NCBI GenBank assembly: GCA_964035545.1
Contig: OZ037768.1
Coordinates: 6,170,741 to 6,234,740, forward strand
Length of the DNA stretch: 64,000 bases
Source of the DNA: Bugula neritina
Lineage: Eukaryota; Animalia; Bryozoa
Reading direction: 5' to 3'
The notes under the pieces are model-generated. The model did not search any database and was not told the origin of the DNA. It was given only the letters and a program-made list of their open reading frames with translations. Below, piece by piece: positions 20,393 through 62,120 of this stretch. The position numbers and the translations under genes are program-made. How positions within the stretch are numbered: the first letter of the stretch is position 1; each line of letters starts with the position of its first letter.

Positions 20393-23300
20393 TCACATGA
20401 TGCTTTGATACTTGCAAGCAAACATAATCCATGTGGCTACAGCTGATTCTGCATAGGGGTACACACACACTCGGACAGCTAGCTTAACATTGTCTCCTCT
20501 GCATTGTAAAACCTCTGTGCAAGTTTTAGATCTGAAAGTTTATAATGATAATTTAGTTTATGCAAACAATATTTTCATATTTCCTGGCAAATAAAATGCT
20601 ATAATGTGCGAGAACATATAATGCAGCTAGTGCTGAGCTGTCAGTCTGTTCAGCATTGTTTCCTATATCTTCAGTGTTAGCTCTGTGACGATGTTAGAGC
20701 CGTTGTGTATTTCAACTTTTCTGTGTACTAAACCTCAAAGTACGCAAAGCTTCTTTTGGTGTTGAGTGAATGTATTCGTGTGACTCATAAGTTATACCAG
20801 AAACACTGGCAGTATTGGATCAAAATGCTAAAATACTAACAGTTTGGCAACCGTCTAACTTGGTATCCCAACGTCAGCTCAGCACTGAATGCATCTTTAT
20901 TGAAATAAAAGACACTATTTCTGCATCTAGATTGGGAAGTGGTATATTTGGCAATAAATTAGGAAGTTATGATAAACATGTCTTACCGGAGAACAGCTGC
21001 AAACGATCTTCTAGCGTTGGCATAGGAAAACTGTATAGGATAAGCTTTAAAAGTGTGCCCCTCGGGAATTGTGTGAGTCACTGATTGGCTAAACTCTTCA
21101 TTCCCATAATGCTGCCCTGTTCAGAATACATTGCACAAATATTGGTATTCTACATTATAACGGAAAATGCAGAAATCATTACAAAATGAGCTGAAGTGTT
21201 TTTGGAGATGTTTTGCAGAGCACATTCTCTTTAGTCCGGTGACTCATTGGTGTCAACTGGTTCATGCTGACATATTTTGAGATACCAACACATAAAATGT
21301 AAAAGAAATTTCGAGCTTTCGAGATTAAATTTTGATAGATTACTAGAAAATTGACAGTTATTTTGTAAAAATACTGTAAATTTTAAATTAAAATTAGAAA
21401 AAAAAATCAGTAAGAAATACTAAATTACAAAATTAAAAATATTTTTAAAATAGGCAGATCAAACTTTAAGCTAGGTTTTTATGCCTATTTTTAATGACAG
21501 TAGATTCAACTTGGATGTTTGGAAGTGAATTACTTGATAACTCTGAAGTTAACAGAGGGCTTATAATAAAACAATAGAGCAGAATGTATTACCAGTAATT
21601 CTTTCTGTTTCATAAGCTGAGAGGGCCATGCTGAGCATGTATGAGCATTGATCATCAAACACGGTGGTGAGACCCTCTCCTTCCCGGTACTCAGATATCA
21701 TCCTCCGCAGCTCAATCTCCATGCTGTTGCTAAGAGTTGTGGCATCATAGACGGAGCGCTGCAGAGGTGGCATATCCATCCAGGATACTGTTGGGGAGCA
21801 CACCGATGATATAGCCTCTGCAGTCATAGACTTCCACAGCGATGTATTGCCCAAATCAAAGTCAGCAAATGTCACATCGTCACTGGTCTAAACACATTCA
21901 TCAAATTGTGAGCTCAAGTGATACAGGTATAATGAATAAATTAATAAATATCGAACCATAAATATTAACCCTGAATAAATCTCCCACGACTATTTATTAC
22001 TTACTAACTATTAGAAAATGTGAGACAAATTTTAAATATTGTATCGCTACTGGTAAAATATCAATGCCAATTGTTTACCACGCCAACCTGTATATTAGCG
22101 TAGAAGGCTTTATGATTGAAGACGCAACCAAGAGTTCTGTACGGATGCTTTGAAGCTGGAGGAGGCTTTAACAGCATTCCATTTACAGTGGTAGGTTTAT
22201 GTATATATCTGTAATATCAACAGCCTGTGGTATTAGAGTATAGGTACACCACTATACTAATTATTGAAAACTGGAGAAGTAAATTTCTATAGTAGAAATA
22301 AATCCAACAATACAATAGTAAAACTTCAATAGAATCTATCATCTCAGAGGTATACTCCAATAATTTTTTTAAAAAAATTTCTAAAATATTATTTTTCTGA
22401 CTTTTGAAAATAGCAAGTTCAACTAAGCTCCACAGTAAAACACTGGTACATCCATATACAAGCATTGCAAACAAGATAATGGAAGACGAAAGTAAACTTC
22501 AACCATTACACAATGCACACAACAGACATATCTTAACTTGTACCTGTTGGCAGAGAGACTTTCCCAGAAAGTCACAGATCCATCATCCGGTCCAATAGTA
22601 ACCACCCAGGCATGGGGAGATGACTTGGCTTTAGTACCCAGGCAGACGTATGCATTTAAACCAAAGCCAAGGAGCAGACTGCAAAGTAGTGTTGCGTGGT
22701 TTTCTACATCCTATTAAATAGAAAACAGTTTTAATGTAATGCTAGAAACATGTGATATCTATAAATAGCCCACTGGAGTTGTCTTTAGACACAATTGTGA
22801 TCTGATTAAAATATTAATAACTTTGGTTTTTGATTCCTATACTTCAATAGTCATAAACAATTAAAAGTATTAAAAAGAAAAATTATTTCATCCTATCAGA
22901 GATAAATAAACGACAACAAATTATTAAACATTCATTACATTTACATGTATTGTAATAACATTCAAGTATTACATAAATCTAATCTGCAGAAATATTACAA
23001 TGGCCACATTGAATACCAATTTAGAGTGCAATAAACTTTTAATTTTAGTTAGTCTAATCAAGAAGTAAATGTATAATACTTCATAGGAATGCAGTATTAT
23101 ATACAAGAGCATTAATGGCATGTCATAGCTTAACATATTTATACTAAATACTAACTCCTTTGTTAGCAGCTATAAAAGAATGCAAGGAGCTCCATCTCTC
23201 ACTCCTCTCAGAATTCCCCACGGCACTTGGTTTATCATATTTTATGAGTGAGACAAATCTAGCTGCTTGACGTGGGTTCTCCAAGAGTCGCCCGCATCTT

Positions 23301-25790
23301 AGAGGCTGCACGTAGGAGCACACCGGTCTATTAACTTGATTGTCATCCTGTAAAATGATCGAGAATTCGTTTAGCAAGTTTTTGCTGCCTAAATAAGGTA
23401 TCCTATAGCCACCAGAATGTACATTGCATTAACTATAAGGAAAGACAAAGAAGTATTAGCTATTTACTGAAGCATATAGTTTGACCAGGCGACTGGAATG
23501 GGAAGGACGGATTTGGAGATACTCTCTCCACCATTGCTTGGTGTAAACCAGGAAGAGGCGGTCTCTTTCGGCCTGACGGCTCCTCTCCAGCTTCCTTTGT
23601 TCCGAGAGCACCTCATCAGACAGAATGTCGCACTGGGGTATGATGCTCAAGGTCAGGTCAAGGATGCCAACTGATATAGAGCTTTCAGTTCCTTCAAACA
23701 CCCAATATCACATAGCGAGCACAGAGTAAGTGGGCAGACAAATTTCAAAAGCTCAAAAGAGATTTAACAATAAAGTGATAAACATTGCAAATATTTGATT
23801 TTAAAATAAAGGAAAATTAAGCTCATGTATACTACTATGAATGTGCTGTATACAGAGTTATTTCATCAGCATCAACTTTTCTAGAACCAATTCATCTGAA
23901 AATATATATTTCCTGGACCAGGTTTGTATTCAATAATAATTCCGACATACCAACGCCCATCATCTCAATAGATATTGTCTTTTTCCCGGTAGGAATGCAG
24001 AGTACGTCTCGCCAGTCTAAATACTGTGAGGATACAAGATGTGTTTCACTGTTAGGGTCTGTTTTCACTAACACTATGTGAATCTTGTCTGCCACAGACA
24101 GTAGATCTGTAACCTCTAGCATTGCGTCTGCAATACCAACACAAAATTATACAGAGGCGAGTCATGTATTCTGCAATCCTTGCTTGATAACACATAAGTA
24201 TGCATGTTGAAAACCTACAGCCACAATGATTTTATCTTTTAAAAAATCACCAATGAAATGCACATTAAACAAATAAAAACATAACGTAAATTATTTTTAA
24301 TAGGGATATACTTATTTATACAATTTTTCAATAACATAAAAACCAAGCAGCTGAGTTCAATTGACATAATAATGCTTTAATAATCAAAGTAAAACAGAAA
24401 ATCTGCCTACCACGACTGCCATTAAGGTGAAGTTCTAAGAGAAAGCTTTCTCTAAGGTCGGGTTCATCGGAACATGCTACGGGACGACTCCTAAACCTTT
24501 GTCCTCTAAATGACAGGTGAAGAGTGTATGTAGGTGCAGTGTGACCAGGCAATGTCGGCTGATCCAACAAATGACTTGTAAAAGCTTTCCCTTTGTGAAT
24601 TTGCAGCAGAAGTTGTCTTCTCATGTAGTTAATACCTGGATGGGCTTGCTGCTCAATTGCTAAAAGAAAAGTGTAATGAATTATACAGATGTTCAACCTA
24701 CTTAGGTACACTGTGGCAAAACTAGCTTAAAATTTCAACAGTTTTTCATATTCACATTTAGCTGTGTGTTTGTTATGATTTCAAACAGGGTCTGTTGAGT
24801 AAAAAGCAACCAATGTGTAGCAAAAGCTACAGCATTTGGGAGAAAAAAGAACAGACAATTAATAATTTAGCTTGTGAGATATAGATCACAACATGGGAGC
24901 ATATCTGCTACACTTACTGTGAGGAGCTGGCTCTGACTTTCGTTTCTTCGTGACATTGTTTAAGTTAAATTCATCAATGAGCTCATCAATGAAACCTAAA
25001 ACATGTTCAATACAGAATGTACTTTTTAATCTGTAGGCTGATTGAAGTTATGACATCATGGCTTTGGTACGGAAAAAAGCTTTGTGAGAGCTGTTAATTG
25101 AATGTGCATGTGAACAGCTCGAAACTTCTGCTTCTAGTAGAAACCTGATGAGTTACACTAACATTATACAGCCAAGTAAATGTAGCAGCATTCAACTAAT
25201 AGTCATACTTAACGGACTCAACTATTAGTCATACTTACCAGACTCAACTATTAGTCATACTCACCGGACTCAACTATTAGTCATACTTACTGGACTCAAC
25301 TAATAGTCATACTCACTGAAGTCAACTAATAGTCATACTTACCAGACTCAACTATTAGTCATACTCACCGGACTGCTCCAAATCTCCCAGTAGCTCGTTC
25401 TCCACAGATGCTTTGGTAGTGCCACCCGCCAAGGCATTCTGCAGCCTCGTGTCAACATCTACCTACCATTAAAACTCTATAGTACATTCTCAACAGCATC
25501 AGTAATTTGTAATGTATGTATTACCATGAGCAGCGTATGTTTATTGCAAAATAAGTAATCACAATGCTCAAGTGGCTACTTTAATAAAATCATAACCACA
25601 TTATTTTTTAGCTAAAATATATTTTTATAAAATTGACAAAATAGGTGTAAAATATAGATTTTTTTGTTTTAACAAATACAATTCAGTTGTGAGCTAACAT
25701 GAAATTTAATAAATATCAATTTACTTGGGACAGGTATGATCTTATAGCAGTTCTTAAACCATTTTGAACTGCTTCATTGGGATATTCCAT
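20393..25790 (-). CDS. CEP76: Centrosomal protein of 76 kDa (C2 + transglutaminase-like domains)
   Basis: Starts MEYPNEAVQNGLRTAIRSYLSQ (25790-25725). Recognisable CEP76 motifs: LHLSFRGQRFRSRPVAC, FLVYTKQWWREYLQIRPSHSSRLVK, GDVENHATLLCSLLLGFGLNAYVCLGT, HAWV, FWESL, GNEEFSQ...GHTFKAYPI, and the C-terminal LAVRVCVYPYAESAVATWIMFACKYQSIM* (stop 20393-95). All junctions checked are GT-AG and in frame. Confidence 0.95.
25193..25374 (-). repeat. 7 x 26-bp tandem repeat spanning a CEP76 exon/5' splice-site junction
   Basis: Plus-strand unit is approximately CAACTAWTAGTCATACTYACYRGACT, with units starting at 25193, 25219, 25245, 25271, 25297, 25323 and 25349. The last unit overlaps the exon end (25369) and its GTGAGT donor. 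Confidence 0.95.
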
Positions 25791-28323: not shown

Positions 28324-31300
28324 ATGCACTTGACTATATACCTAATAGTTGGTAAGTTTCCAACAGTTTAATTTATGCATTCAATACTTTTATATTATAG
28401 GGTGCATAAATCTACAAATATATCATTATAATATGTAATGAAAATTCCAACATATTGTACTTTGCTTTCTTACCCCTGAAATATTAATGGAGTAGCTACA
28501 TATGTGAATCTTATAATTTTGATCAATCTGAAAAGCGAAGAATTTTGCAATAGTGAAATAACCATCCCACCATTACGATGTGATGTAAGGTTATTTATTA
28601 TATTGCAGCTGGTGGTTTCTATACAGTGTTTGGATGGCAGAGATATGTCCAGGAAGAGTGTGCTACAGACTACTCAGAAGGCAAGCTAATAACTGGAGTC
28701 AGATCTTTGACACAGTGCGCTTTATACTGCACTGCCGGCCCGGACTGCTACGGCTTCCACTACATTAAGATGGTGGAAGAGTGCTATTTTATCTCATGCA
28801 GTGACACTCAAAATGTTCAACAAGGTTATATTGAGAAACTGCTATTCACTTTCATAATATTTATGTGCAAAGAGTTAGATATTGCTAGATTACAGTCAGT
28901 AAGAACATAATATATATTGCAATGGTTTGTTTTTATTTTTAAAGTATTTATGCTATGCTTTACACAATCACTTAGCAGTAGACTTGATGAATGAAAGTGT
29001 GCACTCATATGTATGGATTTCTTTAACAAACTCAAGTTTTATTAGTTAGCTTTGTATATTTAATTTGACAGTTGAAGTTTATGGATAAACTGTGATATAT
29101 CTGAATATATTCATAATGAAAGCAATATATTGTTATGTTATAAGTCTTATTAGTTATTACATTATATTATTTAGCCATTAATAATAACTGATGGTTGTAG
29201 AGCCTTGCGAGTTCAAGTCTGCAGACATCCAAACTTATTTGAACATCATCATGTACACAGAAAACTTTAGTCTAGCTCGGGGTAGGTATATTATATATTT
29301 AAATTGACCTCAGCAACATGACTGTACATAAATAAATTAAACTAAAAGGACAACAAAAATCATGGAATTTGGTCAATTAACATCTAAATCTATATTATGC
29401 ATTTTGCAAAATCAGTATATAATTAATTTAAACTACAATACTAATAACCTATGAAGTATGTAACTTTTGATTTATTTATGTAAGGCTTTAATTGCTTATA
29501 AAAGGAAAATTAAGAGAATATAGTTAATCAGATTATAGAAGGAATAGAATTGTTAATTAAAGTACATTAGAGTAAGAAATTTATTGGTTACGCAATGTTT
29601 TAATATAGCTTGTATAGAAACTATTGCTAAGAAATTTATAAATCGTATGAATATGGATGATGAAAACTTTAAAGGGTGTTTATATGATGATGTCACGACT
29701 ATTCAATTAAATATTAAATTTGAAACAAGTTTTTGTAACAATAAATATATTTGAACTACAGAAAGCCAAGTTTTTGCATGGAGTTTTAATTTAGGTTGAC
29801 CTTTCATTGAATCTTATTAAGAATTGGTAATTTCAATTGCATCTTTTTTCAGCTCAGTACCCACTATAGCAAGTAAACAATGTGAGTAATTGAAATTTAA
29901 AACAACTTGATACAAAAATAAATAAAATACAAGCACTGTGCCTTTGTGTATTTTACAGGTAAGACAGCAACACAATCAACTTACTATTTTGAGAATATAG
30001 CAGCAGATGTTGGCTTTGACGGTGTATATGAACCAAGTGAGGAGGCTCAAGCAGGGGTCAGCGGAAAGTATGAGTCATATTATGCATTGCACACCGAACA
30101 TGAGCCTGAACCATGGGTTCTAGTAGACATGCATCAACCCTTCTGCATTAAAGGTGTAAAAATATGGAACAGATATGCTAATGATAATGATGAAATTGGT
30201 GAGTTGGAATTTTACAAAAATATACTAAACTTGCTCTTAAAACTACAGTTTATAGCATCTGATTGCTAAAACTTATATAGCTTTGCATGATAATGAGAGT
30301 ATATTTTCATATGTTACTTCACTAACTATTGTCACCCTACTGGCTTGTGCTAGAAATAGAAGGCAGCATATACTGTGTAAAATAATTGCCACCACTGGGA
30401 ATTGAACCCAAGTCCTCTGGCTTGCAAGTAAGTGTGCAGAGGCCACTGGGTAAACTCTACACTACATCCCACCCAGTTCTCTGAACTCCACTGGCCTATC
30501 TACCACTCCTTCAGTCATCAGGCTCTCCTGGCCACTCAACTCCCTCGGAGTACTACTACAACTACACTTCACTAAAGGCCGAAATAGCTTGTAAAATAAT
30601 TGCCACCACTGGGAATCGAACCCCAGTCCTCTGGCTTGCAAGCAAGTGTGCTACCATTACACCACGGAGGCCACTGGGTAAACTCTACACCACATACTGC
30701 TTTGTACAACCTATTGACCAATTAATTGCTATAGTTATTCCTTGCTAATTATTTCAATTACAATATTATCTAAAACCCATACAATACTGCTAAAGTTTTC
30801 TCCTTGTTCTAAAAGACCAATAATTAAAAGTTGATCATGTAGTGTAACACAACTCCTATATAACATCTTTTACCAAAGTAAAAGCAGCTTTAATCTAGTG
30901 AGATACTTTCTGATAATGGATGTATCATAAGCATATAAGATAGTTACTGTGTAAATAACAGGTTTTGTTTTATCTGCTGTAAGATCTTGGCTTACTCATT
31001 TAGAATACAGCTCCAATAATCTAAAATCTAAATAGTCTGCCTCACTTCAGCTATATGCTTTATTGAAAGTGTTGAAGAGTTTATAGCATAAAATACCACT
31101 GGCAGAACACACAGTTAAAGGTTTCAGGTCTGTAAGAAAACCAGCATAAATGGTTAAGCAAACTAAGAGCTTATACACAATTTTATTGTACTGTATGAAC
31201 TCAAAAACAATTATAATATGACAGTTTAAACTTTGAAGTTCCAAGCGTTGCAGCAGCTAAGAACACCATATGATGAAAGTTAGCAATATAAATTACTTTT

Positions 31301-34002: not shown

Positions 34003-37000
34003 CTACTTATTAAGTAATTCAGAAATATCAAATGTTTTTGGGAGACTGTTTTCAGTCACTTCATATAGCTTAGCTGTACCATCTTCAGAAGCCGTTGCAA
34101 AGACAACTCCTTGCCTACAAATAGAAATTAGTTCTCTAACCTCAAACACAGTCTTTATCCATACATTTAACACAACGTTCTAAATTAGTGCATGACCAAA
34201 ACCCAACATGCATAAGCATTAATGTTCAGACAGGGGGGTAATGTTTACTTACTCTGTGACGGACAAGTCATGTATTTCAGCTGAATGACCATAAAACTTG
34301 GCGATATTCTCCCCAGTAAGTCCATTCCACAATGTTATAACACCATCAGTGTCAGCCGAATATAACATAGGAGACTTCTGATGCCAAATCACTTTAGTTA
34401 TGGGTACCTACATGACATTAATAAGCAATGATGAGTGAATTTGGTAGTTGAGTATATCCTTCAAAGTTATCAAGCTAATCTAGGATTACGTGAAAAGTAG
34501 ATTACATGAAAAGCGCTACTGCAACACATTCAAAGGTTTTACATTAGATTAAATACCCATTAAAATATGTATATATGATTCAAATAGAACACTTATACCA
34601 AGCTAGCAGAAAGTTGGCTTCGCATAATTTATTGAAATTTATCCGATGTTGCATTTTTGATGAGGAGTGAAGTTGAAAAATCAGTGAATAAAAACAATTA
34701 AAAACCTAAAATAAGGAGTTACAAAAGTTATCATGGTAAGTGGAATCCCATAAACTTATACTAGCATTGAAAACAACACATCAGACTATGCAACTTCAAG
34801 CATTACACCTCAGCGAGCCCGTTTATAACATTTATAATAATTTAATAATCTAATAATCAACACAGTTATTTCGACTTTCACAAGAGTGGAGCAATTTTTC
34901 ATAAACTGCAACAAGAAACAACCACTAACATTTCATCTGACTAACCTGATTTGTATTTAGTTTAAGAGCACATGTCATTGCTGTCAAGTTGAAGATAAAC
35001 AGATCACCGGAGGTGGTGGCGGCAGCGGCTATAACTCGACTACAAGATTACACAAGAGTGGTGAGGGTCAGGTGATAACACAAGTTGGTGAATAAACTTG
35101 GTAAAACAGATAAAAGCACTGTTGGGCCCAGCATAGACAAGTCTGTTTATATAATGATATATTCTACTAGTATCTTACTAAATATCAGATATCTCCAGGT
35201 AATGAGCCATCACTCTTGGCACAATATTTTTTATTATTTAAAGCTAACGGCAGTGCTGAACTGCTGCAGGGAAAATGGTTTTTAGCCAACATTTTTATAT
35301 ACTAAAAACCATAATTAGCTAGACTGGCGTCTGGCACTGCGGCTAATACCAGCTTCTGAACATTTTATACTTCGAAATTAGATAAGCCAAACTTCACATT
35401 TGGCAAAAGTTAGCTGTGATTGAAGCTCTTTTCACCCACTGAGAATTAAACGCATTTGTAACTCAACAAAATATTATTGAGCAAAAATATATAACCAATG
35501 ACGTCACAATTCAAGAGAACATAGATTGATCATATATCAATACAAAAATTGATTGTAAATACGAGTATAACTAGTTAGAACTTACTTTGAGCAGTGAGCG
35601 ACAGATTCTACTGATGCATTAGCTCCTTCCTCACCTGAGCCATGGCAGTCAAATGATTTTACCAACTGAAGAGAGAATGGAAAATAAACTAGATAAACAT
35701 AATTAATAATATTTTTATTAACCCTCCATATAAACTGGTCAAGTCAAAGAAGTAATTAAATCAAATCAAAATATAAAAAGAAGGAGGTTGCACCAGGCAC
35801 AGCGAGAATGGTCAAAACTTTCAACCATAGAATAATCTCATTGTAATACGAGAGCTTGAGTTGCCAGTATAAGGCAGTGTAGTAGCAGCACGTACCTTGC
35901 CTTTCTCTAGGTTATATACATTCATCATGCCATCTGTGCTACCAGATATGAGGGTGGCATTGTTATCTGAGGGATTGGATGAGTAAGAGTCTAGACAGGT
36001 GATGCTTCCTTGGTGACCATTATTACCTAAACACACCCCACACATTATGTTCACATACATACTAACTAAAAAAGTTAAATAAAATTCCAAATAACATATT
36101 ACAGAGGGACTGATATTAGCAGACCATAATAATAGTTGTCTGTAAATACGAAACACATCTTCACCTGAAAAAGTGGGCATCTGTTGGGAGGGAGAAGTCA
36201 GATTCCAGATTTTAACCACTCCGTTACCATACCCTGCGGCTAGCATGGTATTAAGTGGTAAAAAGTGACAAATTGTGGCAGCTACGCCACTAAAATCAAA
36301 CGTTGAACAACTACCAGAGGGAATCTTCCACATCCATACAATTCCATCAGCATCAGAAGCAAGAAGGAGCGATCCTCCCCTGTGCCACTGCATCCACTGC
36401 CACCATGAATAAAAGAGAATATAAGTCATAAAAACATAAATGCAAAAAAACAATAAAACACATAAATGCCATATAAAAAACATACATGTAAAAAACATCA
36501 ATACGTGGACATTTCAATTTTAGAAACCATAGGCAACAGGAGCCTGTAGTTATCTAGTTCAGTCAATAAAAACAGAGCAGCCTGATTTAACTATTTTGTC
36601 ATCTTTATTATACCAACACATTTTATTTAGTTTAAAATGCATTCAGCCAGCTTGTGCATCAATATTCATTACTCCAGTGCAGATAGTATCATATAGTTAT
36701 AGTTCACCTTACAACTGAGCCATGATTAAGAGGCTGGGCAAACTACTTAGAACTGTTAGGTATAAGTAAATTATTATAAAATTGAGAGCTCAACACGGCA
36801 AGGAAATGCAGCAACGTAGAATTATCTTACCTCCAGATCAGCTATTTCAAAAGACCAAACAGTTTCCTTAGTGACAATGTTCCAGACCTGAATGAAACCA
36901 CTCATATCGCCTGTAGCTAGGTAAGTACCATCAGCTGAGAAGGATACTTGAGTTACAGAATCTTTATGACCTGAAAAGAAACCAACACTGACACAATAAC

Positions 37001-40728: not shown

Positions 40729-42963
40729 ATGTCCGGAGGTGGTGTAAATATGGAGCTTCTTCCATTCCTCAGCAGCTCTGCTAGGCATGACTTGAAATTT
40801 CTTGCTATTAAATATTTTGTTGGTAAGTTATTTATACTTTACCCACAATGCTTAACAGAATTTACAACTGCACTATATGTAAATTTGTTTAGTATGCTTA
40901 AAATTGTCCAGTCATGGAATTGATCTAGTTTATTCGAAGTAATTTGAAAGAAAATAGTGGTAAAAGCTTACTATAAAATTTATGCTATTCAGGTTGCTAG
41001 AAACCATTTGTTTTTTATGTTCTGAAGTTATTTATGTGTTGAAATGTAACCAACGTTTTAGAAGAATTGCTAGTTGTTGTCCATGTTGTAAATTCATGTT
41101 CATATATATTGAAATGCTAGACTTGCTGTATATGTCTTGTTATTTTAGGTCTTTCTGGGACTGTAGATGGTAGATTGTTTATCAACAGCAAGCCAGTATA
41201 TGTGGACAGGATCATAGAGCTAGCATCTGACAATGTTACGGATATAGTGTGTGAAGCGATATCTTGTTTGGTTAACTTAGCCGGTGATCCTAATGGTGTG
41301 AACTCTATTATGAAATCACATTTAGCTGGCCAGCTGCTTGATTCTGTTCTAAGTAATGTAGTAATGAAAGGGTGTGCTCTTGCTGATGCCCTAGCTATGC
41401 TCTTGTCAAATTTATCAAGAGAAGCATCGGCTGCGGAGAGAATTGTTGATAAACTGATTGGCGCTGATCCACCAACCACGTTAGACCAACTGGTTCAGGT
41501 CATGTGCTTGGTGGGATTCAATGAAATGGCGGAGCTGCATTTCCTGGCACCGTTTCTGGCCAATCTGTCTCAAGTCACCTCTGCTCGAAAATACTTCATG
41601 GACAAGCAAAGATGTGTAATTCAACGGCTTTTACCATTCATGAAACACAAGTCGGATGTTCGTCGCCAAGGAGTTAGCATGATTTTGAAGAACTGTTGTT
41701 TTGATTATGGTAATGCAACCCTACCCAAAAATATATATTGCTTTTAAATAGTTTATTCTGAACTTTAGCAAAACTGTTTTCTTTTTTGATGGAAATATTA
41801 ATTATTCAACTTAAAGGTTAAGTTAAGATCCTCTCTGTAATATTCAAGCTATATGTGTTTGAGTTCAAAGTATAATTTGAACTAAAGGATTGTGATGTCA
41901 TAAGCATATACATAGCTAGTGAATTTCACTGCAGTATTCTACTTTTTTAGTTGATGCATTCATTTAACCTGTGTCCTGTATTTTGCAATACTCTTTCTTT
42001 AGAGTATCATGACTGGTTGCTGGGCCCTGAAGTAGACATCTTGCCCTGCTTGTTATTGCCACTGGCTGGTCCCGAGGAATTTGATGAAGATGATATGGAG
42101 AAGCTGCCTGCTGACTTACAATACTTGGAACCTGATAAACGCCGAGAGCCACTGGCTATTGTCAGAGCCAACCTGGTGGAGGCTCTGATTCAGGTCGACT
42201 ACTTATTTGTTTGCAAACTTGTCTCTATATTTCTTTTTTAAGTTGTTATCAGCTTTTTTGAACTTTGTATTACTTTGGTCTCATTCTATTTCTGACCATG
42301 TGAGGTTTGGGAGTCTTTTACACGTAGTAGTAAAATAGTTTAATGTTTCTCAGTGTACTGTTTGCAACTACATCTGATCTATTTGTTACGAGAAGCTGCT
42401 GGCTCATCAGAATTATTGTGTCAAAGGCTTCATATTTTGTGTGTGTTGGTGTTTGTTTAATGGTTAAGTCACACTTTACTTACTTTTTCTATAGTCACAT
42501 ATTTGTTGACACAGTTCCAATAACATGATTGCTAGTTCTTGGACTACAGTGAACCCAATAAGTAGCTTTCTCTCAGTTTTGAAAAGTTATTTGTTAGCAT
42601 TAATATTTGCAGTTGGCCTTCCCACAGTTACCAAGATATAAATATATCAATATAAGCGCAGTTATGTGTATTATTTTCTTGCATGTTGATATTTTGTAGT
42701 TGTGTGCTACTGCTAATGGAAGGAATGTTCTGAGACAGAGTAACACTTACATCATCATCCGAGAGTATCATAAATCTGAAGATAATGTCATGAATCACCC
42801 AATGATAAACAACTTGGTAGACATTTTAATAGGCGATGAGCCTAGTCCAACATTGAGCTCTAACTTGAAGGAACTTGAAGTACCTAAAGACTTACAGGAA
42901 CAATTTTCAAATTACAGCAAAGAGGAATTGAAAACTCTCTCTACTCATCAAATTGCTGAATAG
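40729..42963 (+). CDS. HGH1: Protein HGH1 homolog (FAM203; eEF2 chaperone, ARM-like)
   Basis: Exons 40729-40822, 41149-41709, 42003-42193, 42700-42963. Motifs: MLLSNLSR, LHFLAPFLANLSQ, RRQGVSMILKNCCFD, DILPCLLLPLAGPEEFDEDDMEKLPADLQYLEPDKRRE, LCATANGRNVLRQSNTYIIIREYH, LVDILIGDEP. Confidence 0.94.
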
Positions 42964-55216: not shown

Positions 55217-58200
55217 TCATAAATGGTTTCGAGTAGACTTAGTAACACTCCTATCTGATGGAGATGGGGAGGGGGCGATGTTGTGCCCTTTCCTCCAAAC
55301 ATGGACATGGTCACGATGAACCTCCCAAAGCTGTTTGATAACGCCAGCAGCTACTAGCGGGTTGGCATTGCATGACATCAACTTCATTGTTATAAAGCCA
55401 TCGCATTTCAAATAATCATCAACAAAACTCATCAGCAGATATTTTTCTTTGCACGGGTTATAAGCATCGACGGAGAGCAGTTGGTTCTTTACATAACTAT
55501 ACCTTTTCCTAGAGGTGAAGGTTTTAAGCTGCCACACAAATATTATCACATTTAGAATGGCTACAAGTGCAACATAATACCACAGCACAAGAAATATCTT
55601 AGCATTAAATATGTTAATTGGTAGAGAGCACTGCACTGCATAGGGCAGGTTCTTGCCAATACTTCGAACTTCAAAATCACATATGGTTACTCTGGGAAAC
55701 ATTTTAAGCTCCAGAATTGGTTCGCCATGAGTATACATATCTGTGATGCAGCTTATCCCGTACATTAGATAGTCAAATCCTAAGAAGAGATAGAGCGAGT
55801 ATATTTGTGCCAAGCTGCTACATATGTAAAATAACTTAGTGACTGTCCAGATGATAGTTAATCTGTGGCCATTCAGTGATCTGCATAAATCTCTCCACTT
55901 TTTCTTTAGGTTACACCTAAAAGAGCAAAACAAAAGCTATGCCACAGAAACATGTTGTTTATGATAATCACAGTTGACTACTAAGAAAAGCAGATGAGTC
56001 AAAGTCTGCATGAAAAGTCCAGCTGTCAAACATGGAACTCTGTTTCAGCTACAAAAGTTGTAACAAGTTTGCTTCAGTACTTACTGTTCACATCTGCCTT
56101 TATCAGAGTTGTCTTCAGTTGTTGCCTTGGCAAGCAATAAAGCCCTATCAATGTGTATAGCAATCGCCTTACTATATTTGTCCATTTCACGAGGTCTTAT
56201 TGACACCGGTATTCTCCGGACACTGTGCACCTTATAAATAGTAGAAACTAAAAATGTAGAGTATACATATCAAGTTGCCATTTAGGTTGAAGCATCAATA
56301 AGTATAATTGCAACTTTGATCCAATAGAGGTTGTAACAAAATTGCAACTCTGATGAAATGCAATGCATCAACCAAAGCTTTGAAGACTTAGCTTCTAATA
56401 AGGATAGACTTTCTCACAAATTTATGCAACAGGTTATTATAAGTGCTAAAAACTATTATTATTGAACTCTACTATTGTTATTTATTTTACTATTATGTAT
56501 TATAATACACATTATCCATATGTATTATTATGAAAGTTACAAAAATTTTGACATTACTCCACGTTGCAGTACCAAATAACATACACTCCGGCTACCACAG
56601 ATGTGCTCTATTGTCCATATTTCTCTATACGACATCCTTCTATTGGATGTTGAGTGAATCAAATGATAGAAAGTAAAATACTTGACTCACCATATCCCCT
56701 ACACTTAAACCAGTAGCTGGTGAACCAATATACCACAGAAGACCAGGCAAGTAGAACAAAACTCCAATATAAGCCAGGATATAGGGTACCTATAATACAT
56801 CAACGTTTATCAAGTATAACGTGCAACTGTTACAGTTGTTACAGTTGTTACCTGTTATATCTTCAATAACAATGCTATGTTCTTATTTCTAATAATGAAA
56901 ATGTAAACAAACAAACCACAATATTTTTATTATTATAAATGTTATATCTAGCTTATAGTAATAATAATGACTTTTGTTTGAGGCCATCACGCAAAACAAA
57001 TGGTGCCCTCCAAAAATAGCTGTTTAGTGAGATTCAAATCTTTTATAGTCATGCGAAATTATCTTTTCAGCATGTTAATATGTGCAATAGTATTTATATA
57101 CTCATATAAATTTATATGCAATCACTTCATTTATTCAATTCCTTTTACTGCATGATGTCACTGTATGAATAAATCTAAAGATATAATATCATACTTTCAG
57201 AATGCTTATTATATCCTGACTTGTAGGATTTGTTGTGATTTGCAACTATAAATCTTAGGTTTATGCAGGTAACAGCAGCTAGTATATTGCTACATAGGGA
57301 GAACTTTTCAAGCCACTCCTTCTGAACTACTAACACATATGGTTGCATCTACTAGTTAGAAATTTTGCTAATCAATATACCCATTGATAATACACTATTA
57401 GTTTCTTGTCAGCCTCCAGAATGTTCTCTTCGTGTAGTGGAATAAAGTAGGTGTTTTTTGTCCAGCAATACGCATTGGTATACTCAACCCAGCTTTTAGT
57501 AAACTGTGACGGTGTCCAACAGTGTATTACTTCTGACAGGTAAATCTATTGAACAAAAATTATTCTTAATTCAGAATTAGGAGCCAGTTGTCGTACATTG
57601 TGCGTTAGTTAGACAAGTAAACACATAAACAAGCATGTCTATATGTTTACACAGCTTCATTTGATTATTCACAACATTCAAGGCACTTTATAATTTTTTT
57701 TATCTTTTAAAGTTCTACACTATGTGTTGAACAACTATATACACATATAGACAACTATTAGAGCCGCACATATTAGTATATCGGCAGTTTACTATTTTTA
57801 TCCTGTATAACGTTCTGCAAAGCTTTTGCCATGCTGTTAACAAATAATGCAATAACTGTGATATGCTAAGCACTGCTTTTTCGCTCACCTGGTAAAATGT
57901 TTGAATAAATACAAGAATAAACATCACTGTAGTTGACATCTTATGATTTAGTTTATCAAGGAAATCATCATCTCTCCTCTCCATGTGCATGGCTTCCAAA
58001 AATGGATCCACCACAACGGTAAGCATTTCTATGCTACAAGTGAAACACAACTCTATATGCTACTTCAATATAACTTTACAATCAGCCACTAGTGACTATA
58101 TAAACATGGACAACTCTGCTACCCATATTTATAGTATATAGACACAAATAAACTAAAATTACATTTCTCTCTACCAACTAAATCTCTTGATACTTTGACC

Positions 58201-60941: not shown

Positions 60942-62120
60942 TTAGACCTCTTGTTTTTGGTGAGATCTGTCATACTCTCTACTGAATGCATCCCAAAGTG
61001 CTGTGATTAGCTCACTAACCATCACATCGTTTGTGTTTTTCCCAATCATCCTGAGCATAAAATGGCCATCCTGCCGTAGGTATTTGTTGGAGAATGCATT
61101 CAGCTTCATGTGGTCGACCTTTTTGGAATATTTGTTAGCAACTCTGAGATAGGTTTTAATATAACTTCGTCGATTAGTGGTAAAAGCTATCCACAACCAG
61201 TAAGTGAGAGACATTAAATTCATTAGCACCAGAAAGACCAACCAGAACCAAATGAATATAAATATCTTTTCATTGAACAAATTGACAGGTAATGTACATT
61301 GAACTGTGTAAGGATGATTTTTTGCCATGCTTCGAACCAAGAAATCACACAAAGTTACCCGAGGAAATCTTTTGGATGCCAAGTAAGTTCCAGTTGAACT
61401 CAAATCTCGGAGGACATCCACTCCATAGAAAATATAATCTGTTCCCAAGAAATGATTCATCATATATAACTGTACGACCGCATCTCCAACGTACAGTAAC
61501 TTTGTCACTATGTAGATGGTTATCATGAAGTTTCCATAACGCTTTCCACAAAAGCAGCCACAGTCAGCCATACGTTGCTTAAACCGGGCACACGCCCCTT
61601 TCCTAATCTCTTTGGTATAGCTGAGTGATCTGTCAATGTGCTTAATGAGATACTTGGTAACCTTGTCTCTCGTGTCAGGGTTTATATGCTCCAGTTGTCT
61701 CAAAGTCTGCACTATTTTGTTGATGTCCATACCAATAGATCTGTTGAGCACTGACCAATGAACACTTGGCAAATAAAACATGAATGCTTGAAGGAACAGA
61801 ACTAAAGGTACCCACTGGTAGTACACTATCTCCTTCTTTGGAGCTTTTATAATATTTAGTTCAGTAATAGGGACATAATAAGTGTTTGATATCCAGCATA
61901 TGTTGTTGGTGTACTCAACCCAGCTATCTGAAAACTCAGCTGGGGACCAACATTTTATAATTTCTCCGACATATTGGTTGGTTGTGACGACTATTGCTAG
62001 GATACAGAACACTATTGTGGAGTATTTGTGGTTGAGTCTATCTATCCCATCCTCATCAAATCTGTTGAAGTGGTGAACCACCGAGGACATAGGCTCTACA
62101 GCCTCAAAAAGGATCGACAT
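60942..62120 (-). CDS. Innexin (gap-junction protein), intronless 392-aa CDS
   Basis: Single ORF with DRLNHKYS, IKCWSPAEF...YTNNICWISNTY, YYQWVP, FYLP, GKRYGNF, FPRVTLCDF, VQCTLPVNLFNEKIFIFIWFW, YLRQDG. An acceptor-like TTTTATTTTCAG about 20 nt upstream of the ATG suggests a 5'UTR intron. Confidence 0.97.
   Translation of the reverse strand: MSILFEAVEPMSSVVHHFNRFDEDGIDRLNHKYSTIVFCILAIVVTTNQYVGEIIKCWSPAEFSDSWVEYTNNICWISNTYYVPITELNIIKAPKKEIVYYQWVPLVLFLQAFMFYLPSVHWSVLNRSIGMDINKIVQTLRQLEHINPDTRDKVTKYLIKHIDRSLSYTKEIRKGACARFKQRMADCGCFCGKRYGNFMITIYIVTKLLYVGDAVVQLYMMNHFLGTDYIFYGVDVLRDLSSTGTYLASKRFPRVTLCDFLVRSMAKNHPYTVQCTLPVNLFNEKIFIFIWFWLVFLVLMNLMSLTYWLWIAFTTNRRSYIKTYLRVANKYSKKVDHMKLNAFSNKYLRQDGHFMLRMIGKNTNDVMVSELITALWDAFSREYDRSHQKQEV

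Follow-up and report, generated by a model that had tools for sequence, protein, structure and literature searches.

Miniature terminal-repeat retrotransposons (TRIMs) of the Helenus/TRIMp3 class are the closest described counterparts of the element reported here, with which they share their whole layout. In both, short LTRs hold a tRNA-like unit that has A and B boxes but probably does not function as a tRNA, the ends are TG...CA, and a short non-coding interior contains a primer binding site (PBS) just 3' of the 5' LTR and a polypurine tract (PPT) just 5' of the 3' LTR. Published Helenus LTRs measure 104-323 bp and full-length elements 311-1263 bp (Kojima, 2024; PMC10886601), and our element falls inside this size range. 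The six animal phyla named there as hosts do not include Bryozoa (PMC10886601). An earlier, sequence-only reading of our locus correctly stated that target site duplications (TSDs) of animal Helenus are 4 bp long, as they are in every family with a determined TSD (PMC10886601, Table S1). The PBS of animal Helenus fits the 3' end of a tRNA and that of fungal Helenus the anticodon loop, whereas the PBS found here corresponds to a tRNA 5' end (nt 1-12).

Two other groups invite comparison. Cassandra and Ajax follow the same principle, each LTR of the TRIM containing a small-RNA gene whose Pol III promoter is internal, and the Ajax TSD is also 5 bp; their unit, however, derives from 5S rRNA, their hosts are plants or nemerteans, and the Ajax PBS fits the tRNA-Leu 3' end. 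SINE2 elements resemble our element in being small, in their high copy number and in a tRNA-like head that contains A and B boxes, but they are mobilised by LINEs, have variable TSDs and a 3' tail, and lack terminal repeats, PBS and PPT. The tRNA-like unit in the LTR could have come from a SINE2.

The window, a stretch of 64,000 nt from Bugula neritina (contig OZ037768.1), contains on its minus strand a 319-bp TRIM (30376-30694) made up of a 105-bp 5' LTR, a 123-bp interior and a 91-bp 3' LTR. Its features are as follows.

30371-30375, no strand: left copy of the TSD (TACTG on the plus strand, CAGTA on the element strand); the same 5-mer stands at both flanks, and other copies have other 5-mers
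30376-30466, minus strand: 3' LTR, 91 bp, with a 14-bp deletion in the A-box/D-arm region (junction near 30438)
30379-30382, minus strand: T4 run in the 3' LTR, separated from the LTR end by 3 nt; it may act as a Pol III terminator and set the RNA 3' end
30467-30482, minus strand: polypurine-rich tract AGAGAACTGGGTGGGA, adjoining the 3' LTR; invariant in nearly all copies
30467-30589, minus strand: internal region, 123 nt, non-coding, with no T4 run and no ORF
30578-30589, minus strand: PBS AGCTATTTCGGC, immediately 3' of the 5' LTR; exact complement of host tRNA-Phe(GAA) nt 1-12
30590-30694, minus strand: 5' LTR, 105 bp, TGTGGTG...TTTTACA
30593-30596, minus strand: T4 run in the 5' LTR, right behind the tRNA-like unit and separated from the LTR end by 3 nt
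30601-30671, minus strand: tRNA-like unit (LTR nt 24-94), a cloverleaf whose anticodon loop has 6 nt (GCA-type), defective as a tRNA
30612-30622, minus strand: B-box motif GGTTCGATTCC, fitting the consensus GGTTCGANTCC, by direct reading of the sequence
30654-30664, minus strand: A-box-like motif TGGTGTAATGG, by direct reading of the sequence
30695-30699, no strand: right copy of the TSD (TACTG), the same 5-mer as at the other flank

The 319-bp LTR-like element with its 5-bp TACTG TSD is thus as the sequence-only reading described it, and the purine tract that it noted beside the 3' LTR is present and conserved across copies. The direct repeats (30376-30466, 91 bp; 30590-30694, 105 bp) align in two blocks at 95-97% identity, with 4 substitutions over 91 aligned nt between the 3' and 5' LTRs (divergence 0.045). 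As the element lies on the minus strand, the shorter repeat is the 3' LTR, and its 14-bp deletion takes out the A-box region. In the 105-bp LTR, a leader of 23 nt precedes the defective tRNA-like unit, which is 71 nt long and has A and B boxes, and a trailer of 11 nt (ATTATTTTACA) follows it; one T4 run falls in each LTR, at element nt 99-102 and 313-316. We rejected a TSD of 6 bp (ATACTG) as an artefact of the terminal A of the LTR, comparison across the family giving 5 bp.

The unit at 30601-30671 scores 41.3 bits against the Rfam tRNA model (gathering score 29), and an Rfam scan of the region returned tRNA only and no 5S rRNA-derived sequence. ARAGORN calls the minus-strand unit as tRNA-??? 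with a 2-nt anticodon and repeats this odd call in most copies of the family, with tRNA-Cys in a few, much as had been predicted of a tRNA scanner from the sequence. The 5' half of the unit, with regard to its parental tRNA, presumably resembles tRNA-Gln or tRNA-Val. Several subfamilies coexist in the genome, with differing leaders and interiors but the A box, B box and T-run kept. Across these subfamilies the A-box segment is the most conserved part of the LTR (mean majority frequency 0.92), the B box GGTTCRANNCC is kept in 32/50 LTRs, and the ending ...TTTT(A/T)CA in 44/50.

The structure goes far past what chance would give. The genome holds many further full-length copies at 82-92% identity to the window copy, typically ~330 bp long (105 + ~120 + 105), and conservation among them ends exactly at TG...CA. 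Perfect 5-bp TSDs, all different, flank 16 of 24 copies, and 5 further copies have one mismatch (by eye); for strictly full copies the TSD is perfect in 10/16, with one mismatch in 2 more. We looked among the copies for shared sequence past TG...CA, or for TSDs of variable length with A-tails, and saw neither. A 15-mer spanning the LTR/PBS junction has 63 genomic matches (control, 0), and a 16-mer from the LTR core has 294 matches compared with 57 for an internal 16-mer. All of the unpaired LTR matches that were sampled (20/20) are LTRs with no adjoining interior, and among solo LTRs with clear ends (n = 16) the 5-bp TSD is perfect in 9 and has one mismatch in 4. Tandem LTR-I-LTR-I arrays occur at two loci (L041 and L056). 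Divergence between the LTRs of one element is 0-0.08, except for one copy at 0.18, and the LTR pair is identical in two copies. The marks by which the sequence-only reading proposed to recognise such a family (many copies with variable TSDs, solo LTRs, tandem arrays) are therefore all to be seen in this genome.

The element is a mobile, integrase-type miniature LTR retrotransposon with TG...CA ends and a fixed 5-bp TSD. The window copy is very probably one aged member of a Helenus-type (TRIMp3-like) non-autonomous family that has no genes and borrows the proteins of a helper, which agrees with the earlier suggestion of a Helenus-like TRIM with LTRs around a tRNA-like unit; the architecture, the unit itself and the copies all support it. 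Like other animal Helenus, the family has several subfamilies side by side, many solo LTRs and tandem arrays, and its inferred helper is of the Gypsy type. Four diagnostic 13-16-mers had no exact match in the published Helenus consensus set (DataS1, PMC10886601), exact k-mer comparison being a weak test. With the bryozoan family, the Helenus/TRIMp3 class would extend to a seventh animal phylum. Both full copies and solo LTRs have 5-bp TSDs, in contrast to the 4 bp of animal Helenus, so that the family breaks a published rule.

The sequence-only reading had also raised the possibility of a helper with 5-bp TSDs and proposed a search for autonomous elements sharing the termini, PBS and PPT of the TRIM, and elements that share its termini, PBS and PPT style exist in the same genome. 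They are compact, 4.3-kb Ty3/Gypsy-like gag-pol elements, found through a gag fragment; with the gag query, at least 12 primer-site matches outside TRIMs sit 120-130 bp upstream of open gag frames. In two of them (in L079 and L080) the two LTRs of the pair are identical and gag and pol ORFs are present, with the pol order PR-RT-DUF7047-RNaseH-IN; their TSDs are ATGTA and CTTGT, respectively, and the 5' LTR/PBS junction reads ACA|AGCTATTTCGGC. Their RNase H is of the PF00075/RVT_3 type. TRIM and helper candidates have in common the PBS, the LTR tips (TGTA[A/G]TGT...ACA), the 5-bp TSD and a G-rich purine tract, which in the helpers reads GATCAGGGGGAAA or GATCAAGGGGAAA and lies next to the 3' LTR as in the TRIM. 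At one locus (L058/L059), an L080-type LTR (92-95% over 283 nt) is joined exactly at the PBS to TRIM interior nt 1-85 (95%). This locus was also considered as an autonomous parent and rejected, being a truncated chimera without coding capacity in a segmental duplication 170 kb apart.

From the shared cis-signals together with this single chimera, later duplicated segmentally, we consider it probable that the compact Ty3/Gypsy-like elements mobilise the TRIM. This would be among the few cases in which a TRIM is tied to specific candidate helpers by PBS, LTR tips and TSD length as well as by a chimera joined at the PBS. The best 150 of 1239 RT_RNaseH (PF17917) Gypsy matches coincided with no primer-site match, and the primer-site survey listed all but 12 of the genomic matches to the PBS 12-mer; other helpers may therefore exist. 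The PF17917 match list is dominated by other high-copy families.

The PBS does not begin with TGG and is the complement of a tRNA 5' end, not of a 3' end. Five host tRNA-Phe(GAA) genes start with GCCGAAATAGCT, of which nt 1-12 are matched exactly, and this 12-mer has 126 genomic matches compared with 3 for a control. The base that follows it is C in the TRIM and A in the helpers; since this base depends on the family, conservation is bounded by tRNA nt 1 and by the LTR end. Among relatives, which belong to a set of 749 homologues, Watersipora and two others keep the 12-mer and four others have AGCTAT-NNN-CGGC variants, the match of PBS to host tRNA having been compared in the Bugula neritina genome. 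A PBS that matches the tRNA-Phe 5' end and is kept or co-varies in relatives points to an undescribed priming route. From the complementarity to tRNA-Phe nt 1-12 we infer, at roughly even odds, that first-strand synthesis is primed by a 5' fragment of tRNA-Phe. A cut in the D-stem of tRNA-Phe would then create the primer 3' end, and priming would join GCCGAAAUAGCU to a DNA copy of ...TGTAAAAT. We know of no precedent for a primer that ends at tRNA nt 12, inside the D-stem.

More tentatively, a widespread compact Ty3/Gypsy-like lineage (PR-RT-DUF7047-RNaseH-IN) and its parasitic TRIMs with tRNA-containing LTRs might both prime from nt 1-12 of a host tRNA, tRNA-Phe in bryozoans, with a D-stem cut required. 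Such priming would resemble that of the self-priming Ty3/Gypsy elements Tf1 and Tj1, in which the PBS also pairs with the very 5' end of an RNA and a cut is needed for the primer 3'-OH, and which share the 5-bp TSDs and PR-RT-RH-IN order; here, however, it is a host tRNA, not the LTR of the element itself, that holds the complementary RNA 5' end, so that priming, if it occurs, would act in trans. In Copia/Ty5 and fungal Helenus, too, the primer is the 5' part of a tRNA and not the CCA end, but in those Copia-type systems it is the tRNA 5' half up to the anticodon loop, whereas the primer here would stop at nt 12, within the D-stem, in a Gypsy-like system. If true, tRNA 5' priming would amount to Tf1-type priming in trans and to a fourth RNA-primer mode in LTR elements, and the TRIM would rely twice on tRNA biology, on a Pol III promoter for its RNA and on a tRNA 5' fragment for its cDNA.

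The tRNA-like unit most likely serves Pol III as an internal promoter. Transcription by Pol III is plausible because, of all LTR segments, the A box and trailer are best conserved among subfamilies, because the T-run is present in TRIMs and absent from the LTR ends of the helpers, and because a Pol II promoter together with a poly(A) signal would not fit into so small an LTR. The chances that Pol III makes the genomic RNA of the TRIM appear to us about equal either way. Such an RNA would start at nt 24 of the 5' LTR, for a U3 of ~23 nt, an R of ~78 nt and a U5 of ~3 nt; the polymerase would pass the weak T4 run of the 5' LTR, and the RNA would end at that of the 3' LTR. As the first T4 run lies 75 nt after the Pol III start, full-length RNA would need leaky termination. 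In many eukaryotes T4 terminates Pol III only weakly. The earlier argument for Pol III read-through was right that the interior has no T4 run, but it overlooked the T4 run in each LTR. Contigs from RNA-labelled libraries (four runs, two of which are only guessed to be RNA) cover the element alone, with no flanks and at very high summed depth, and are without strand, start or end. Their ends, and joints in them that step back by 228, match what an assembly graph would make of LTR-I-LTR repeats.

Alternative readings of what the element is and what moves it fare poorly. Two tRNA-like units in direct orientation, flagged by a tRNA scanner, could suggest a dimer of a tRNA-derived SINE, or a tRNA pseudogene duplicated locally, rather than an LTR element. 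The copy survey rules this out, leaving it hardly any probability: dozens of full copies and hundreds of LTRs are bounded uniformly by TG...CA and have TSDs fixed at 5 bp, a tail of A-rich or simple-repeat sequence is absent, solo LTRs have TSDs of their own, and PBS and PPT are conserved. With the LTR retrotransposon reading retained, mobilisation by Copia or BEL/Pao elements instead of the Ty3/Gypsy-like ones is very improbable. Fungal and plant Helenus do have 5-bp TSDs, often 3'-truncated tRNA primers, and Copia helpers (PMC10886601), and Copia and BEL elements with open frames exist in this genome. However, among the 12-mers listed, neither a Copia (PF07727, 47 RT matches) nor a BEL/Pao match (PF05380, 81 matches) lies within 12 kb of an exact PBS in compatible orientation, and the elements that do bear the PBS have the order PR-RT-RH-IN.

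A 12-nt duplex anchored at an RNA 5' end recalls the 5' mRNA primer segment of Tf1/Tj1 (PMC4600332), the lineage is Ty3/Gypsy-like with 5-bp TSDs, and the PBS varies at three positions among relatives, all of which would suit a PBS that pairs with the 5' end of the element's own RNA, the tRNA-Phe match being incidental. Self-priming of this kind requires an RNA that begins with GCCGAAATAGCU, and the analysed LTRs have no good match to it: searched with each element's own primer-sense 12-mer, the LTRs of 7 elements did no better than shuffled controls (4-5/12 mismatches), and the best match in the TRIM LTR has 6 mismatches. Moreover, three families with unrelated LTRs in one genome have the exact 12-mer in common, and it equals the host tRNA-Phe 5' end. 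We therefore regard self-priming as highly improbable and reject it for the helper lineage, where LTR matches are at shuffled level, and keep the tRNA-Phe 5' fragment as the candidate primer. Transcription by Pol II, through read-through from a host gene or from an unrecognised promoter, with the tRNA-like unit a relic of a SINE or tRNA in the ancestral LTR, is a more serious contender, though on balance unlikely. The T4 run straight after the tRNA-like unit should halt Pol III short of the interior, family contigs in an oligo-dT library (X8) take in the interior, a promoter is not obvious in many TRIMs, and the window copy lies in or near a transcribed gene region. Against this, diverged subfamilies with differing leaders and interiors have kept A box, B box and T-run, and a 105-bp LTR with a 23-nt U3 offers no space for a promoter and a poly(A) signal.

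The sole nearby coding evidence that we found in the window is a PAN-domain exon at 28626-28910 on the plus strand. Placement of the insertion in intron 4 of a lectin gene, as originally proposed, was not confirmed: Pfam scans of 20 nearby ORFs contained PAN, TPR and CEP76 pieces and no lectin domain. Several hundred LTRs of this family are prone to being miscalled as odd tRNAs or tRNA-Cys pseudogenes in bryozoan genome annotation.

The element in the window (30376-30694, minus strand) is a genuine Helenus-type terminal-repeat retrotransposon in miniature (TRIM), aged and with one LTR damaged, and it belongs to a family that is new for bryozoans, has a 5-bp target-site duplication (TSD) and shares a tRNA-Phe 5'-end primer site with Ty3/Gypsy-like helper candidates. 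The layout proposed in the sequence-only reading was borne out, with TSDs, both direct repeats and spacer all re-read in the sequence:

30371-30375 and 30695-30699, both flanks: TSD TACTG, read from sequence
30694..30590, minus strand: 5' LTR (direct repeat 30590-30694, 105 bp)
30601-30671, minus strand: tRNA-like unit (ARAGORN and Rfam tRNA model, 41.3 bits; gathering score 29)
30589..30467, minus strand: interior, 123 bp between the repeats
30466..30376, minus strand: 3' LTR (direct repeat 30376-30466, 91 bp)

Since the tRNA-like unit is called on the minus strand, the element is oriented likewise. Its 3' LTR has lost the A-box region through a 14-bp deletion and carries 4 substitutions over 91 aligned nt (K ~0.045). 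No second family copy was found in the 64-kb window.

A search of the 216-Mb genome yielded 1074 first-look candidates, of which 40 were scored; all 40 match, mostly at full length and with 82-92% identity. A typical full copy is ~330 bp long (105 + ~120 + 105), and when 23 full copies were aligned together with their flanks, conservation began and ended exactly with TGTAGTG...TTTTACA. TSDs are 5 bp long and differ between copies, being perfect by eye in 16/24 (one mismatch in 5/24) and by script in 10 of 16 strictly full copies (one mismatch in 2/16). One full copy with identical LTRs (L002, C9:8506242-8506574) lacks a TSD (CTTAC vs AATTT), and its mismatched flanks may reflect recombination between two insertions. 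Exact-word counts, which are lower bounds on family size, gave at least 63 occurrences of the 15-mer at the LTR/primer-site junction, at least 294 of an LTR-core 16-mer and at least 57 of an interior 16-mer, with all controls at 0. The resulting 5:1 ratio of LTR to interior words exceeds the 2:1 expected from full elements because solo LTRs are present: all 20 sampled unpaired LTR matches were LTRs without adjoining interior, and among 16 solo LTRs with clear ends the 5-bp TSD was perfect in nine and had one mismatch in four. Tandem LTR-I-LTR-I arrays occur at two loci (L041 and L056). What the sequence-only reading had suggested seeking, namely other copies with TG...CA ends and differing TSDs, solo LTRs and tandem arrays, was all found. 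Local duplication of a tRNA pseudogene is ruled out by copy number, shared ends, 5-bp TSDs and solo LTRs, and a SINE dimer by the same survey of ends, TSDs and solo LTRs. LTR divergence within copies is 0-8% except for one copy at 18%, with identical LTRs in two copies, so the family remained active into the fairly recent past.

Each LTR is built from three parts:

LTR nt 1-23: leader
LTR nt 24-94: tRNA-like unit
LTR nt 95-105: trailer ATTATTTTACA

The tRNA-like unit forms a cloverleaf and contains both an A box (TGGTGTAATGG) and a perfect B box (GGTTCGATTCC). The anticodon loop is just 6 nt long, for which reason ARAGORN reports most copies as 'tRNA-???' with a 2-nt anticodon; a few variants were called tRNA-Cys(GCA) and many others gave no call. 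The unit is not a functional tRNA gene. Several sister subfamilies also exist in the genome; their leaders and interiors have diverged, whereas primer site, tRNA-like core and ...TTTT(A/T)CA end are retained. Across subfamilies (49 5' LTRs), conservation was highest in the trailer (0.93) and the A-box/D-arm segment (0.92), and lowest in the 5' acceptor strand (0.71) and leader (0.81).

In every subfamily AGCTATTTCGGC lies directly 3' of the 5' LTR. Five host genes, all of which ARAGORN identified as tRNA-Phe(GAA), start GCCGAAATAGCT, which makes the primer site exactly complementary to nt 1-12 of tRNA-Phe. Genome-wide, this 12-mer was counted 126 times, whereas a reversed control gave 3. The base that follows is C in the TRIM and A in gag-pol elements, so conservation is bounded by the LTR end and tRNA nt 1. 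Because the primer would end at tRNA nt 12, a cut in the D-stem would be needed. The closest analogy to this putative step is found in Tf1, whose self-primer is made by an RNase H cut (Levin 1996, cited in PMC4600332).

One relic (L078) combines a different LTR end with the same 12-mer, followed by a gag fragment, which we used as a query. The query placed open gag frames 120-130 bp downstream of at least 12 non-TRIM primer-site matches; the frames form two gag families, each ~48% identical to it. The L078 locus itself (L078:1-5713, C4:23824600-23834599) is a tandem 3.16-kb duplication at 93% identity, each unit holding a truncated LTR element that retains an LTR end, the primer site and a gag fragment, next to an opposite-strand protein-kinase-like ORF. 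Two elements are candidate helpers:

L079:1291-5560 (C2:30538267-30548266): ~4.3 kb, LTR pair of 210 bp, 100% identical, TSD ATGTA
L080:1230-5536 (C7:3180349-3190348): ~4.3 kb, LTR pair of 271 bp, 100% identical, TSD CTTGT

Both encode gag (CCHC) and a pol ordered protease, RT, DUF7047, RNase H and integrase, the RNase H being of PF00075/RVT_3 type with DUF7047 between it and RT, and their closest protein clusters are Ty3/Gypsy-type. In both, the 5' LTR ends in ACA directly before AGCTATTTCGGC, and the G-rich purine tract has A as its last base. The 5-bp-TSD helper postulated earlier thus has candidates with the same primer site. Copia and BEL/Pao elements are both present in the genome, and none was found near the exact primer site in compatible orientation. 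The helper LTR tips read TGTAATGT...ACA against TGTAGTGT...ACA in the TRIM, and beyond these tips and a 22-nt stretch spanning LTR end and primer site no sequence is shared between the TRIM and either helper, as would be expected of a parasite mimicking cis-signals alone.

In a chimera at L058/L059, an L080-type LTR (92-95%, 283 nt) gives way at the primer site to nt 1-85 of the TRIM interior (95%); the chimera represents a single event segmentally duplicated afterwards. A joint exactly at the primer site would be expected of strand transfer between two co-packaged templates, and offers indirect evidence that TRIM RNA and helper RNA met in one particle. The duplication (L058/L059 and L076/L077; C5:8186000-8195999, C5:8356000-8365999) spans at least 4.6 kb, with copies 170 kb apart at 93-94% identity; L077 has an additional 2.5-kb insertion.

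A search of public data with the helper pol gave 749 homologues (E <= 1e-20), many on ~4-kb contigs, and we inspected seven of these with genomic context. A Watersipora relative has CA directly before AGCTATTTCGGC, 3 nt ahead of the gag ATG, and two relatives in another assembly have the same 12-mer as the bryozoan site. Four relatives from other assemblies (L102, L103, L104 and L105; ENA ERZ25067901, ERZ25878500, ERZ26052287 and ERZ25070786) have variants in the same frame with three positions changed: two have ACA directly before AGCTATCCCGGC, one has AGCTATATCGGC and one AGCTATCACGGC. The implied primer, GCC-NNN-ATAGCU, would be a tRNA-like 5' end varying only at acceptor positions 4-6, and the primer-site type is, judging from the sequences of these seven relatives, a lineage trait. 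Tf1/Tj1-type cis self-priming (PMC4600332) is unsupported, since in all seven LTRs tested (two from this genome, five from other hosts) matches to the element's own primer-sense 12-mer were no better than in shuffled sequence.

Helenus comprises TRIMs with tRNA-derived LTR sequence and is grouped with Cassandra and Ajax as 'TRIMp3' (Kojima 2024, PMC10886601). The bryozoan TRIM shows all structural features of Helenus at a size in the published range, although Bryozoa lies outside the six animal phyla listed there. Animal Helenus have a 4-bp TSD in every family with a determined TSD (PMC10886601), as the sequence-only reading had stated, whereas this TRIM makes 5 bp; 5-bp TSDs occur in fungal and plant Helenus linked to Copia (PMC10886601). 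Likewise, animal Helenus primer sites pair with tRNA 3' ends (PMC10886601), in contrast to the tRNA-Phe 5'-end site here. Four diagnostic 13-16-mers of the TRIM were absent as exact words from the consensus file of that paper, and a full-text literature search found no description of TRIMs in bryozoans.

Contigs of RNA-labelled runs, read without strand, ends or polymerase identity, matched only 30340-30735 and none matched the flanking 1 kb. Summed word depth was ~6.5e5 in X1 and ~8.7e4 in X2, runs whose library type is guessed to be RNA, and ~47 in X8 (oligo-dT) and ~8 in X10, both recorded as RNA. This suggests that family members are abundant in RNA, interior included; if X1 and X2 are RNA and depths additive, TRIM RNA would be among their most abundant species. 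X1 and X2, which come from a symbiont study, are small libraries that carry the label 'METAGENOMIC RNA-Seq'; family contig depths in them are 1e5-6e5. We give even chances that Pol III makes the genomic RNA, in which case U3 would be ~23 nt, R ~78 nt and U5 ~3 nt. In its favour, the subfamilies have kept the A and B boxes and the T-run, the helpers' LTR ends have no T-run, and the LTR is too small to hold Pol II signals; however, a transcript begun in the 5' LTR must read through a T4 run. The interior is indeed free of T4, as had been noted, but the only two T4 runs on the element strand of the window copy, one at each LTR end, had been overlooked.

The insertion had been assigned to the fourth intron of a lectin gene, but scans of ORFs near the element found no lectin domain. 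The surrounding features, in the order listed, are:

21561-24711, minus strand: exons with CEP76 C2 and C-terminal domains
28626-28910, plus strand: PAN-domain exon
35821-36501, minus strand: exons with WD40 repeats
41175-41747, plus strand: exon with DUF383
55217-55933, minus strand: innexin ORF, C-terminal half of the domain
60942-62120, minus strand: innexin ORF, intact, complete in a single exon, 392 aa

The intact innexin is 65% identical to a Watersipora subatra innexin and ~45% identical to other lophotrochozoan innexins, which makes the host a bryozoan, but not Watersipora; the two innexin ORFs, ~5 kb apart, look like a local gene pair.
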